This document shows positions 18,045 to 64,000 of a DNA stretch of 64,000 bases, one piece after another; position 1 is the stretch's first letter; each line of letters starts with the position of its first letter. The translations under genes and the position numbers were made by a program. Under the pieces are notes generated by a model, which did no database searches, was not told the origin of the DNA, and saw only the letters and a program-made list of their open reading frames with translations. The stretch is from Oculina patagonica. Lineage: Eukaryota. The stretch is taken from assembly GCF_052425735.1 (NCBI RefSeq), contig NC_135758.1:28334001-28398000 (forward strand). Reading direction: 5' to 3'.

Positions 18045-19294
18045 TTAACTTGCACACAGTCCTAAGCTAACCAATGCAAAGAGCCACAGTATGTAAGACG
18101 GCAACGAAGTTGATGATCTACTACAAGGATTCCCCAGATGCATGTTACACAAGTCGCTATCACAACAGAACTTGCAGTGGGTGGTTTTCTGGTATTTGCC
18201 AAGTGTCCACTTCATGGGGAAGAGTCTTTTACAATCTCTGTCACAGCCTCTCACCACTTGGGCTGTTGTTCCATTAGGGAAGACCATCCTATACAGAGAG
18301 CACTGGTTAAACCAACGGGTGCACTTTTGAGGCCTTGTTCCTTGCATAGTGTCCGTGCTACAAGGTCCTTCCTTGGAGTTACAATAGTGACACTTGATAA
18401 GACCTACAAGATATCGAATTTGAAAGAAAAAAGCCTATTTCAATCTTAAGGATTAGTCAGGGGGCAGATGGCTCAATGGTCCCGACGCTTTACTCAGGTT
18501 TCTGTAGCATGAATGATATGCTATATTCTATCGCAGGTTAGTAGAAACTCAGTCACTTGTTCTACTGGAATTCCGCGAATCTGATTGGTTCTCCCATTGT
18601 TTTCCATTCGCTAATACAACGCGATCGTGCGCGCGTTGCTCTTTAAAGGGACAAGTATTCTTAAATTTTGGCTGGAAAGTACATAAAATTTTGAGTTATG
18701 GACTGCAGTCCTTCCGAGTTGCTACTAAAACAATTGGACTACTTGCCCTCGTTTTCTATGAGCGTTAGTCAACTCGCTGCGCCCTTGTTGACTATTCGCT
18801 CAAAGGAAACTCGGGCTCGTAGCCTAATTGTTAATTTTGTTGGGCTGCTCGAACAGCTCCTTGGTACTTCAATTATACTCTTGTGTGGAGAGACAGGGCA
18901 CCATGTTAATTATGTGTTTTGCCAAAAAAAAAAACACAACATGACACCGACCAGGATTAGATCCGATCCAGATCAGAGAGTCCAGCGCACTAGCTAACGA
19001 ATTCGAAAGGCCACCGCGTAAACGATATCCCATTTGAACTTGAAAATTGAACAGCAGTGGTATACCCCATCACAGACTCAAAGTTTAAAACGGCAGCCGA
19101 CCATATTATGTTACTATGGAGAAACATTGTGAGACGTACCCAACTGTATTGACTTCAAAGGAAACCTTCAATGGGCGATTGCAACAATTCTCGTATTCAA
19201 TTTAGAAATTAGATGTAGATTTACCTTTTATCACTGGGACATCCGTGAACAGGATGATGCATAAGACGACGCTACGAAAATTTGAACTAGGCAT
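18045..19294 (-). CDS. GPI-anchored Ly6/uPAR (three-finger) domain protein, copy A
   Basis: Signal-peptide exon 19294-19225 (MPSSNFRSVVLCIILFTDVPVIKG) spliced in phase 1 to exon 18403-18045 (LIKCHYC...CCDSDLCN plus hydrophobic C-terminus). Probable upstream non-coding exon with donor near 20223. Confidence 0.85.
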
Positions 19295-21684
19295 AAGTAG
19301 AAGTAAAAGCCAAGCTAGGAGTGCCTTTGGTCCTCCCCTAAGCAAAATTGATACTACAGAGTTACTCCAGATACATTCTGATCTATGGCACCTACAATAA
19401 AATAAAGAAATGAAATGACGGTTATATTCAATATCATATAAACGCCGTGACTACCAGACAAGGTGGATGTTATGTCACTGGAACGTAAACGCCGTGTCTA
19501 TTTTTCGACCAATTCAAGACCCGAAGATAAATTAACTTCCCAAACAATTACCACGTGATTAACACAAGGCAAATACATAGACCCCTAAAATGAAGGTTTT
19601 GACACAAGATACATTTTCTATCAGACTGCGAAACCACAGTCAGGCAAAATGAAAATAGTCAGTAAATTCTTATAAAATTCGCCAGGAGACCGTGGGCTTT
19701 GTGAAAACACTGTGTCCTTAAAGTGCAAAAACGTTTTTGCATTGTATATTCAATAAGTAGCCATTTATTTATATAGAAAAAGAACGCTTTTGTTTGTGCG
19801 GACTCTGTCGTTAATAGTACTTTCTTGCAGGGCTTTATGATCATTTGCCTGAATTATTTAATTTAGCTTGAAATGGAAGAGTTATTTTTTGGAATAAGAT
19901 CGGAATAACTGCCTGATGAAAATAAACAGAATACTGGTTCTGAATTTGAATATGCAAATGCGGGTAAAAAGCACACGATACGACAGTAAATACAAAGGCT
20001 GCTGATAAAGGCAAGAAGACTGATGAGAAACTAAAGTCGAATGATGATATGTAGTAGAATATAAATAAAATAGACTTTAGCTTGGATTAAAGTTTCTTTT
20101 TTAAACAGATTACCACAAAATGTGAATTGAAATGATTTACTTGTAAACGCACCTGTCTTTGCAATGTGACATTAGCATTAACAGCACGACTTAAGACAAA
20201 TCCGCTTATGATTAGGTACTCACCGATGCCCTTGGAAATATCTTAATGGGATTACTAATCTATCGTGCACGTTCAAAACTCGAAGCTGGGCCAAAGAGAA
20301 AGCTTAAGCCGCTAAGAAGATATATGAATATTTACATGCTGGTGAGCGTGGTGTGGTTGCTAGGCTTTTTTAAGAGCCATCTGTGACGTCATGTTTCGCG
20401 CGGGTATGCCGCCAATTGTCAACTGAGCTTGACTTGTAGGCATGCGCCTTATACAATGAATGTCGGTATGATTTTCGGTGGTATTGGGACGTCTCAAAAG
20501 CATAATAGGCAATTGGAGCGTTAGTAGCGTTACAGAAGCAGACCAGAGGCAGCTTATGATAGGCAGATTAAGGGGCATGATAGTAGAAATTTAAAGTAAC
20601 TCTGAAAAGGCTTAAACTAAGGTGATATCTCCCCCCCTCAAGACAAAAAAGAACAACATCAAATGATTAACGGAGCTCTTTTGCTATGAGAAGTAAATTT
20701 TGTCAGAACAAGTTTTTTTTTGTACTAAAAGATTTACGACTTTTTTTATCATCGTGAATACAATGGCACATAAAGTACATTAAAAAAATCGTGTCAGTGA
20801 TGCGAGTACTTAGTACATCATTTACAATACTACAACAATGCCTTGAATGATAACGTCCAACGAACAATTCAGAGCAAGTCGAGAGTTGTGTGTCAATGTT
20901 GTTTAATATTTAGAAACAACAAGTTGCGACATTTACAGAAACAAAATGAGAGCTGACACTCTTGTACAACTTTGTGTCTGTTGTGGTTCATTTTTTCCCT
21001 TGGTACAATCTGGTATTTCCTTCGTTTTACATTCCTTAATTACGTAAGAAAAATACTAATTTGTACCAATGGCAAGATTGAACTGCAACATGTCCACTAG
21101 TTTGGGAACAATAATGGGTGTCTTCAGTCGTCTGATAGTGCATGCAATGACCCTACTGTAAGTGAGGGAGCTGATGCAGTCCTTTTAAGTCGAGAAATTA
21201 CCGAGTCACCGATCGCCGTTGTTTCTTGGCCATCGTAGCTTCGTAGTGGCATGGCTTATGCATCATGAATACAACTTTGTGACAACGTTATTGAACAAGC
21301 TGGTGTGGCATTTTATCCAATAAGCATGTTTACTTTACTCAGGCTCTGGATAAAAGGATCTGAGTTTTTTGTACAAAGTTTAAACATTTTAACAGGTTTC
21401 AATTATAACGTTTTTGACTAGTTCTTATTGTGATTTTCTTCACAAGGTCTCTTTAAATAAAAAAAGCATATAATCTGTATAAATAAAAATATCTAGTAAA
21501 ATAAATATGTAAAAAATAACTAGTGGGTGCGTTTTAGTCGTGGATTTAACTCCATTTTTAAGTGCTGCGTCTTTGATGGCCATATTTTCGCGACTGTGAT
21601 CATTCCGCGCTATGCCGATCCACGAGACAATTCTCGCAAAAATACAGACCAAATGTCATGTAGTATGCAATGGAACTGGCTCAT

Positions 21685-62500: not shown

Positions 62501-64000
62501 AAATTGACGAAAACCTTCAAGTAGAGCTGGCTGTTGTTAAAATTGTGCCAGGCGGGTCGTTTGTTGTTATCTCTAGTAAAAATCTTACTCAAATACTGCT
62601 CGAGTCGGCTGTAGAAATCGGCCAGAGACTTGGAGGAAGTGTAGTAAGCATAAAGCCAAGATTCGCTAGACCAACAACTCAAGCACCGCCAGTCGTAAAA
62701 ACATCAGTACCTGGACCAAGTCGTACACAGCCTGAAACTGGAAAAACGACTACAGTAACGCAAACACCGCCAGTAGTAAACACAGCAGTACCTGGTCCAA
62801 CTACTCAGGCACCAGTAGGTCCGGGTCAAGCAGCTGCCAGCAAGGGTGGAAACAATGGTGGGGTCATTGGTGGTGTGGTCGTGGCTGTGCTTGTGGTTAT
62901 CATCCTGGTTATAGCGTTGGCGGTCTGGTATTTCAGGTAATAACAGTTGAAGTCTTTGGTCGTCCTTCTTTTACTTGAAGTTTAGACAGTTTGGTTTCTG
63001 ATGACAGTCAACTCTCGTTTAAGACTGACACCATTGGGACCGGCCGCATTGTCTGTCTTAAAACGCTTCCACTGCTAGGCGTAAAGGCATACGTGTAATA
63101 TAGCCGGCATAAGCGTAAAGTAAAAGTGAGAACAGAGGCAACATCAGCATTGTTAACTGCAGGCACAAGCGTAAAATAATGAAAGGACCATATTCTTCTT
63201 TATAGTTGTCACTACTACAAATTTTTTTTTTTTTCAACTTGCGATATAAGCATTTTCAAAAATAAGCGCATGAAGAACAGTTTTGTTCCCTTGTGCTTAT
63301 ACGTTTGCGTTATACCTCATGCCGCTGTGATTCGTATAGTACAGTGACCTCGACAAAAGGATCCTCGACGAGATTTCTTATGGAGGTTGTTTATAGGGTT
63401 GTTTTTTTTTTTTTTTTTTTTTCAAAATTATCTCGTCGCCAATGTAGAACCGCCAAAAGTTCAATAAAAGACAAATCGTATTTTAATCGACTTGTCCGCC
63501 ACGGCACATTTCACAGTACACTACTTTTGTTTGTAACTAGAATGCATTACCACCAGCCTAATATATTCGGAAAACAATTAGCTGACATCGATTGGCTCTT
63601 ACGACATTCCTTCAACAATTCACAGAAGCTCGACACTACAGTGAGGAGAGCATATGAAAAATGATAGCATTCGTTGTTCCCATCTATGCATCGTTTACTC
63701 TTTGTTCATACTTTTTGTCGTGCGCATGGTTACATCACAAAAAATAACTGTCTAGGAAACTCATCCTCGAGTTGCATCTAATGACAAGAAAAATTCCATT
63801 AGATCGAATATTAAAAATGGGATGATATGGTCCACCTTGTCATAGGTGAAATGAAATAGGGAGTAGCCATCAATACTAGAAAAAATCTTAGACATGTCTT
63901 GGTTTAGTTTACTTTAAAACAAATTGCCTAACACCTCTGTTAGTTTTGACTCGCACAGCCTTTTTATGTTTGAACAGGGTAAAAATTCCCGGTCTTCCAT
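47552..64000 (+). CDS. LRP-like receptor 2: propeller-EGF, 3xSRCR, propeller-EGF, S/T stalk, EGF, SEA-like, TM (3' end outside window, start codon unresolved)
   Basis: Exons 47552-47653 (probable signal), 50414-50831, 51992-52404, 52831-52965, 54456-54491, 55425-55766, 56425-56454, 57023-57364, 57960-58289, 58681-59062, 59461-59885, 60310-60834, 61027-61070, 61560-61651, 62427-62936, probable 63978-. SRCR motifs [50 protein letters not shown]. Confidence 0.85.
48820..49190 (-). repeat. Tandem tRNA-derived repeat (~1.5 units)
   Basis: CCCGACGGGAATCGAACCCATGGC occurs twice (B-box GGTTCGATTCCC on the minus strand), each preceded by TTTTTCAACAATGACAC. Confidence 0.7.
50097..50375. repeat. Degenerate (ACTG)n microsatellite
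   Basis: Directly visible. Confidence 0.85.
51119..51375. other. Assembly gap (N run), intronic
   Basis: N characters. Confidence 1.
52450..52710 (+). mobile_element. Degenerate copy of the tRNA-derived SINE
   Basis: GCGGTGGTCTTATAGTTAGTGCG..GACAAGATGCTTTA..CAGGGGGAGT, co-linear with 9339-9638. Confidence 0.55.
53038..53615. mobile_element. MITE with GGAGCCC subterminal repeats
   Basis: GTCTCAAAGGGG / CCCCTTTGAGAC inverted ends and many GGAGCCC(T/G) direct repeats. Confidence 0.6.
53730..54356. mobile_element. piggyBac-type non-autonomous element
   Basis: TTAA|CCCTTA ... TAAGGG|TTAA. Confidence 0.75.
54735..55376. mobile_element. GC-rich non-autonomous DNA transposon, TAG..CTA termini with 9 bp TSD (AcademH-like)
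   Basis: Perfect 28 bp TIR TAGCCTGCGAACAGGCTCCCGAGTGGGG. Exact TSD CTAAATATT at 54726-54734 and 55377-55385. Confidence 0.85.
55980..56300 (-). mobile_element. 5'-truncated CR1/L2-type LINE tail
   Basis: Minus-strand [35 protein letters not shown] (resembles a LINE ORF2 C-terminus), then AATAAA and a (TCTA)n tail. Confidence 0.6.
61692..61980. repeat. ~43 bp minisatellite (about 7 units), intronic
   Basis: Repeats of TTTCAATTTCCATGTCATTTACAGGGTCGAGACAGGCTCCCT. Confidence 0.85.

Follow-up and report, generated by a model that had tools for sequence, protein, structure and literature searches.

When genes for small surface proteins stand head-to-head with genes for large receptors, are they held together by a common function, by common regulation, or only by history? 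This question is raised by a stretch of 64,000 nucleotides (nt) of the chromosome-scale contig C1 (28334001-28398000) of the 529-Mb assembly of the coral Oculina patagonica, hereafter the window, whose own positions are used as coordinates throughout. A sequence-only reading had described in it two Ly6/uPAR (LU) genes, Ly6A and Ly6B, on the minus strand, diverging from two receptor genes, R1 and R2, on the plus strand and resembling those of the LDL-receptor-related proteins (LRP). All four genes are found where that reading had placed them, the LU genes with two coding exons each and the receptor genes with many, and all are intact (Table 1). Here, we describe the locus as a conserved divergent gene pair, a candidate for a shared promoter, which stands beside an expanding receptor array and is plausibly co-regulated.

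Transcription and conservation of the divergent pair

The evidence from RNA consists of assembled contigs of two RNA-type runs placed on 21301-27300, and both runs contain spliced transcripts of Ly6B and of R1. For Ly6B, the joints 22070/22723 and 22821/23465-23571 are present in the two runs, and the non-coding first exon has three alternative donors (23571, 23542 and 23465), all joined to the acceptor at 22821. The non-coding first exon of R1 is joined from 26344 to 27093 in a contig that continues into the exon at 28805, and the proposed start of R1 at ATG 27135 agrees with both the gene model and the RNA contigs. All of the RNA-supported splice sites of the two genes are canonical. The two genes had been said to diverge from a shared region of ~4.3 kb; this figure is correct as the distance from ATG to ATG but not as the spacing of the transcript starts, which lie at most ~2 kb apart because non-coding 5' exons precede the start codon in both genes.

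Two conserved non-coding blocks are found here, at 23739-23888 in the first exon of Ly6B and at 25919-25981 just upstream of the first exon of R1, and their counterparts in Desmophyllum, with 77-81% identity, are spaced by ~650 nt. Their arrangement would be compatible with an ancestral bidirectional promoter, without amounting to proof of one. The interspersed repeat at 24540-24905 has at least 45 scored copies and 1592 candidates, and at other sites it forms inverted pairs spaced by 1.5-3.5 kb, an arrangement suggestive of DNA-transposon termini; this element and the segment 26701-26900 in the first intron of R1 are highly repeated, and the summed contig depth in RNA run X1 reaches up to 2080.

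Absence of the linkage in related species had been named as an outcome that would speak against a functional locus; instead, the order receptor, Ly6B, Ly6A is present in three other assemblies, in all of which the receptor lies on one strand, followed by Ly6B and Ly6A on the opposite strand. It is kept in the coral assembly L001, with 64-80% protein identity, in Desmophyllum pertusum (L017) and in Porites lutea (L016), where the neighbouring receptor has SRCR domains and is R2-like (70% identity vs 39% for R1), and to which silent-site divergence is saturated. The other flank, with Ham1, CISD and Rad50, is syntenic within Robusta and was not found within 10 kb in Porites, while the receptor side is retained there. 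From the assemblies compared, the order receptor, Ly6B, Ly6A predates the split between Complexa and Robusta, ~415 million years (My) ago.

The LU genes and the receptor family

Within each pair, strong divergence together with a shared exon architecture had been reported, and this description holds: the Ly6A and Ly6B proteins are 30% identical and their genes have one phase-1 intron each, while R1 and R2 are 36% identical over the first propeller and EGF module and keep their exon boundaries. Ly6B encodes a product of 154 amino acids (aa) that is 99% identical, over its full length, to the protein of O. patagonica LOC144662465 at NCBI (P0001), and its 3' untranslated region (UTR) continues below 21301, to ~20935. 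Both LU proteins have a signal peptide, a cysteine-rich domain that opens with CxxC and closes with CC...LCN, and a hydrophobic C-terminus; in the putative glycosylphosphatidylinositol (GPI) signal, small residues (SKAG in one gene and SRSS in the other) precede a short spacer, and the chain then ends in a hydrophobic segment 15-16 residues long. The features that define the LU family, an N-terminal signal peptide and a ten-cysteine pattern ending in CCxxxxCN, are both present, and an alignment of 13 LU sequences including orthologues holds 12 invariant cysteines and an invariant asparagine after the last core cysteine. Spliced transcript-derived orthologues have the same junction between signal peptide and LU domain as Ly6A.

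In Pfam, UPAR_LY6 and Toxin_TOLIP both match the two proteins below the curated cut-off, and for PF00021 the gathering cut-off of 24.8 bits is not reached by either Ly6A (18.2 bits) or Ly6B (17.3 bits; E-values of 0.003-0.007). The orthologues P0005-P0007 carry precomputed PF00021 matches and P0164 carries PF17064/PF00087. An AF2 model of the LU protein, of moderate confidence (pLDDT 66.7), is all-beta between two terminal helices; its top Foldseek matches, weak as they are (E >=0.57), come almost entirely from three-finger toxins, Lynx1, uPAR, GPIHBP1 and TGF-beta-receptor ectodomains, and an LU profile run against the PDB returned only SLURP-1, PSCA, bucain and MT2, again weakly (E 0.39-9). 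We accept the predicted LU assignment because of the cysteine pattern, the Pfam matches of the orthologues and the weak matches that are consistently three-finger.

Both LU genes are constrained, since the ratio of non-synonymous to synonymous divergence (dN/dS) from their orthologues is 0.09-0.25 (0.09-0.22 for Ly6A), and purifying selection acts on all of the genes tested, namely Ly6A, Ly6B and the propeller exons of R1. Ly6A and Ly6B are each other's only close relatives within the genome, and their split is older than the Complexa/Robusta divergence, since Porites has separate orthologues of both. In public annotation Ly6A is probably missing for O. patagonica, because no identical protein was found in the searched collection, and the two genes are merged into one 293-aa protein in Desmophyllum, at L017 10001-15175, and one 199-aa protein in Porites, at L016 10001-17562, where the transcript-derived P0006 presents Ly6B as a separate gene, against that annotation.

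R1 encodes a signal peptide, three units of a YWTD propeller and an EGF module, a Pro/Ser stalk, a further EGF module, a juxtamembrane domain, a transmembrane (TM) helix and a long tail, each propeller being split across two exons and followed by an EGF exon. No SRCR domains are found in R1. Among the receptor exons searched in Pfam, matches to Ldl_recept_b have E-values down to 7e-23, and the first propeller of R1 has its best matches in LRP2, LRP4 and LRP6 (single-stretch E ~1e-29). A protein search with one propeller exon returned generic LRPs with multiple LDL-A (LA) repeats at 30-40% identity and exon-sized fragments, within a length window that excluded proteins of 1500-2000 aa. In the stalk exon, 36033-37694, the Pro/Ser repeat drifts among SPSP, ITFT and HHHL readings, all three frames are open and the GC skew is -0.57; errors in repeat length or indel errors could account for this drift, as could a genuine mosaic.

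The R1 tail carries FNNPGY and NPTY (NPxY motifs), YEEI, LYAEI, YENYTY repeats and the C-terminus ETII; of these, the orthologue L013 retains NPxY, YEE(I/M), LYAEI and ETII as well as the YENYTY repeats. Within the tail exon the frame changes near 40730, at an A-run, and reverts near 41350, and L013 has a single open reading frame (ORF) of 525 aa; the two compensating one-base changes are probably assembly indels. Pfam searches with the juxtamembrane and tail segments of R1 and R2 matched no family.

R2 follows the plan of R1, but a triplet of SRCR exons occupies the place of the second propeller and EGF unit, so that two propellers are present. The three SRCR domains score 104-115 bits against a Pfam cut-off of 26.1 (E 3e-30 to 3e-33), and the short tail carries FENPGY and NPIYSEI. 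In the R2 model the intron phases mismatch at the junction 60834 to 62427, and a candidate first exon at 46915-47023 was rejected because neither Porites nor the paralogues support it. A tandem repeat in the R2 intron at 61672-62108 gives long open frames with a recurring peptide unit and no Pfam match.

The arrangement of two LU genes with two receptors, on which the sequence-only reading had built, proves to be an effect of the window edge. In the 80 kb examined beyond the window end, four further receptor genes lie within 75 kb rightward, one on the minus strand, of which only the first propeller and EGF module were seen, and three on the plus strand, each with an SRCR triplet. R1 is the leftmost member of a tandem array comprising at least six coral type-I receptors, all predicted to combine YWTD propeller/EGF modules with a Ser/Thr/Pro-rich stalk and an NPxY-bearing tail and to be free of LDL-A repeats. 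With the first-propeller exon of R1 as query, at least 99 matches are found in the genome, ~50 of them in one 2-Mb array (C10 15.9-18.04 Mb) and others in clusters at C1 42.2-42.6 Mb, C12 6.8-7.0 Mb and C14 3.4 Mb; with the PF00021 profile, at least 52 additional LU exons are detected, grouped in several tandem clusters, both counts being lower bounds. The closest paralogue of R1 lies 14 Mb away, at C1 42.26 Mb (48% identity vs 42% for R2). All other LU clusters among the matches listed are separated from receptor clusters by more than ~0.9 Mb, and the adjacency of Ly6 and receptor genes is unique to the present locus. The expansion of propeller exons resembles those in immune-type receptor families. 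The locus thus documents a large, unnamed receptor family, with propeller/EGF units, with or without SRCR domains, a mucin stalk and an NPxY tail, in dozens of genome copies.

As for the name given to these receptors, the YWTD six-bladed propeller followed by EGF and the NPxY tail motif of the LDL-receptor (LDLR) family are present in R1 and R2, but a six-frame motif scan of the window plus 600 nt found no LDL-A signature, and Pfam Ldl_recept_a had zero matches among the receptor exons scanned. The label "LRP-like" is accordingly a fair description, whereas strict membership of the LDLR family fails: the receptors are LRP-like rather than canonical LRPs because they lack LDL-A repeats. Assignment to LRP5/6 (arrow) likewise fails: the propellers number three in R1 and two in R2, LA repeats are missing, and the tail of the R1 orthologue contains no PPPSP.

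To the left of the LU genes, the window holds Rad50-like exons (~1910-2066), a CDGSH iron-sulfur protein gene (8633-9043, plus strand) and Ham1/ITPase exons (~9990-13860), in the same order as in Desmophyllum. A minus-strand ORF at 6407-6979 combines a Ulp1-type peptidase C48 domain with a PHD finger and is likely part of a transposable element.

Table 1. Gene models, exons and assembly gaps of the locus (window positions; CDS, coding sequence).
Feature	Position	Strand	Remarks
Ly6A	18045-19294	-	Coding exons 19294-19225 (signal peptide) and 18403-18045 (LU domain, GPI-type tail); 142 aa; GT/AG sites, phase-1 intron
Ly6B	21301-24002	-	Non-coding exon 1 to >=24002; exon 2 22821-22723 (ATG 22801; coding 22801-22723); exon 3 from 22070, CDS to 21685 (coding 22070-21685)
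Interval between outermost RNA-supported exons of Ly6B and R1	24003-26033		Repeat fragment ~24540-24905; conserved blocks flank or enter
R1 gene	26034-41750	+	13-exon model; exons 1-3 from RNA; orthologue L013, 81-89%
R1 5' UTR exon	start <=26034, end 26344	+	RNA contigs
R1 exon 2	27093-27210	+	ATG 27135; RNA contigs
R1 exons 3-6	28805-29216, 29873-30279, 30895-31023, 31835-32240	+	Exon at 28805 reached by RNA contig
R1 exons 7-10	32938-33359, 33697-33813, 34057-34456, 35072-35487	+	
Assembly gap	33413-33574		Inside R1 intron 33360-33696; L013 aligns residue 617 to 618 across it, without loss
R1 exon 11	36033-37694	+	EGF3, Pro/Ser repeat stalk of ~480 aa, EGF4
R1 exon 12	38892-39330	+	Juxtamembrane domain and TM helix
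R1 exon 13	40421-41747	+	Cytoplasmic tail
R2 gene	50414-64000, past window end	+	Tail exon 63978-64503 extends 503 nt beyond window
R2 exons before SRCR	50414-50831, 51992-52404, 52831-52965	+	
Assembly gap	51119-51375		Inside R2 intron 50832-51991; flanking exons align whole to Porites orthologue
R2 SRCR exons	55425-55766, 57023-57364, 57960-58289	+	
R2 exons after SRCR	58681-59062, 59461-59885, 60310-60834, 62427-62936	+	

Shared regulation, neutral adjacency or partnership

We tentatively read the locus as a receptor at the edge of an array and an old, divergent LU tandem pair, kept adjacent by a bidirectional regulatory region common to both, a reading to which we would give a little less than an even chance. 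Such a region would keep the LU pair and the receptor together, and because it would be shared, the LU proteins and the neighbouring receptor would be made in the same cells and would meet on the same membrane. Several observations weigh against this. The RNA comes from two runs only, both as assembled contigs, which speak for the joint presence of Ly6B and R1 and not for their co-variation; the outermost exon ends are the limits of these contigs and not mapped transcription starts, and the raw poly(A) runs X23 and X24 placed only 2 and 5 partial reads on 21301-27300. The exact Ly6-receptor pair has changed, because the neighbour in Porites is R2-like and not R1-like, and one Complexa-like assembly has two Ly6A-like copies among transposons, without a receptor within 10 kb. 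Furthermore, coral gene order is reported to be highly conserved among all corals across the ~415-My split (PMC6214176), and for this reason the retained adjacency is weak evidence for shared function.

This last point also leads to the alternative of neutral neighbours, in which a chance historical adjacency, with neither shared regulation nor shared function, has persisted only through the slow rearrangement of coral genomes; we regard it as a serious possibility, though one that falls clearly short of an even chance. In its favour, besides the general conservation of gene order (PMC6214176), the left flank is likewise syntenic within Robusta, no binding signal was found between the products (the complex prediction described below gave no answer and counts neither way), and LU and receptor-type exons are so numerous (at least 52 others and at least 99, with no other LU cluster listed within ~0.9 Mb of receptors) that a single chance adjacency of the two is not improbable. 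It sits less easily with the head-to-head orientation, retained in all three of the other species showing both genes, with the conserved 5' non-coding blocks merely ~650 nt apart in Desmophyllum, and with Porites, in which the adjacency is kept even though the other flank is absent within 10 kb and the identity of the receptor differs.

A true receptor/co-receptor module, in which GPI-anchored LU proteins would bind the ectodomains of the neighbouring receptors and tune ligand binding, clustering or endocytosis, much as LYPD6 does for LRP6, is in our judgement unlikely. There are precedents for LU proteins acting with LRP receptors, uPAR and LRP1 being one such partnership. For LYPD6 and LRP6 the partnership is documented (PMC6600238, PMC7582953), and at the present locus the linkage is conserved, Ly6B and R1 are jointly transcribed, and the products of both gene sets are surface proteins whose ectodomains are intact and constrained. 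Yet LYPD6 binds LRP6 via an Asn-x-Ile (NxI) motif in loop II, absent from a non-binding paralogue (PMC7582953), and this motif is absent from the LU domains of Ly6A, Ly6B and all of their orthologues (15 LU sequences), the sole N-x-I being in a C-terminal tail. The receptors have neither LA repeats nor PPPSP, the large arrays of Ly6 and of receptor genes at other places in the genome show no linkage, and the presence of two Ly6 genes beside at least six receptors rules out a one-to-one pairing. A complex prediction between the first propeller of R1 (as two exon-encoded halves) with EGF1 and the LU domain of Ly6B gave a score of 0.00, which is no answer, the split-chain input being unlike the calibration of the tool, and counts neither for nor against binding. 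If LU proteins did act with these receptors, the LU/LRP partnership would date to the cnidarian-bilaterian ancestor or would have arisen a second time, and a concrete surface-receptor pair would be available for studies of microbe and symbiont uptake in corals.

The most far-reaching proposal is that of an ancient cassette, dating from before the split of Complexa and Robusta (~415 My), in which a bidirectional promoter would co-express GPI-anchored LU co-receptors and members of a coral-expanded family of LA-less LRP/SRCR endocytic receptors. The LU proteins would gate the uptake of ligands or microbes, and the whole would correspond, in cnidarians, to LYPD6-LRP6, with a role in recognising symbionts or pathogens; this proposal, too, we hold to be improbable.

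Comparison with known systems

uPAR has three LU domains and LRP1 works through LA clusters, whereas the coral proteins have a single LU domain and the receptors no LA repeats. Pro-EGF, a type-I membrane protein, and nidogen are alike in domain layout, with YWTD propellers and EGF modules and without LA repeats, but they have neither the SRCR triplet nor the long Pro/Ser stalk nor a tail of the NPxY/YEEI/PDZ type.

The genes for LYPD6 and LRP6 are not known to be neighbours in vertebrates. The two systems are alike in that a GPI-anchored protein with a single LU domain, bearing cysteines beyond the canonical ten, would act with a type-I YWTD propeller/EGF receptor, the coral anchor being predicted and the partnership putative. 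Four propellers, three LA repeats and PPPSP characterise LRP6; the coral receptors, with three propellers in R1 and two in R2, are devoid of LA repeats and carry NPxY in place of PPPSP. The coral LU proteins are also unlike LYPD6 in lacking Asn-x-Ile (PMC7582953).

SRCR proteins are numerous in cnidarians, in unusual combinations of domains that include SRCR with CUB, trypsin, MAM and Ig (PMC5119243), and R2, with its three SRCR domains, is alike in this respect; a term search of the text of that survey did not find the propeller/EGF/SRCR/NPxY layout.

The LDLR family (LRP2, LRP4, LRP6) differs in the LDL-A repeats, absent from the window, and in the three SRCR domains that R2 and the later members of the array insert. 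It shares with the coral receptors the propeller and EGF unit, a stalk and EGF module before the TM helix, and the FxNPxY tail. By analogy with LDLR-family tails, the coral proteins may serve in endocytosis and signalling and recruit PTB-domain adaptors by way of NPxY, and the tail of R1 might engage additional SH2 and PDZ partners.

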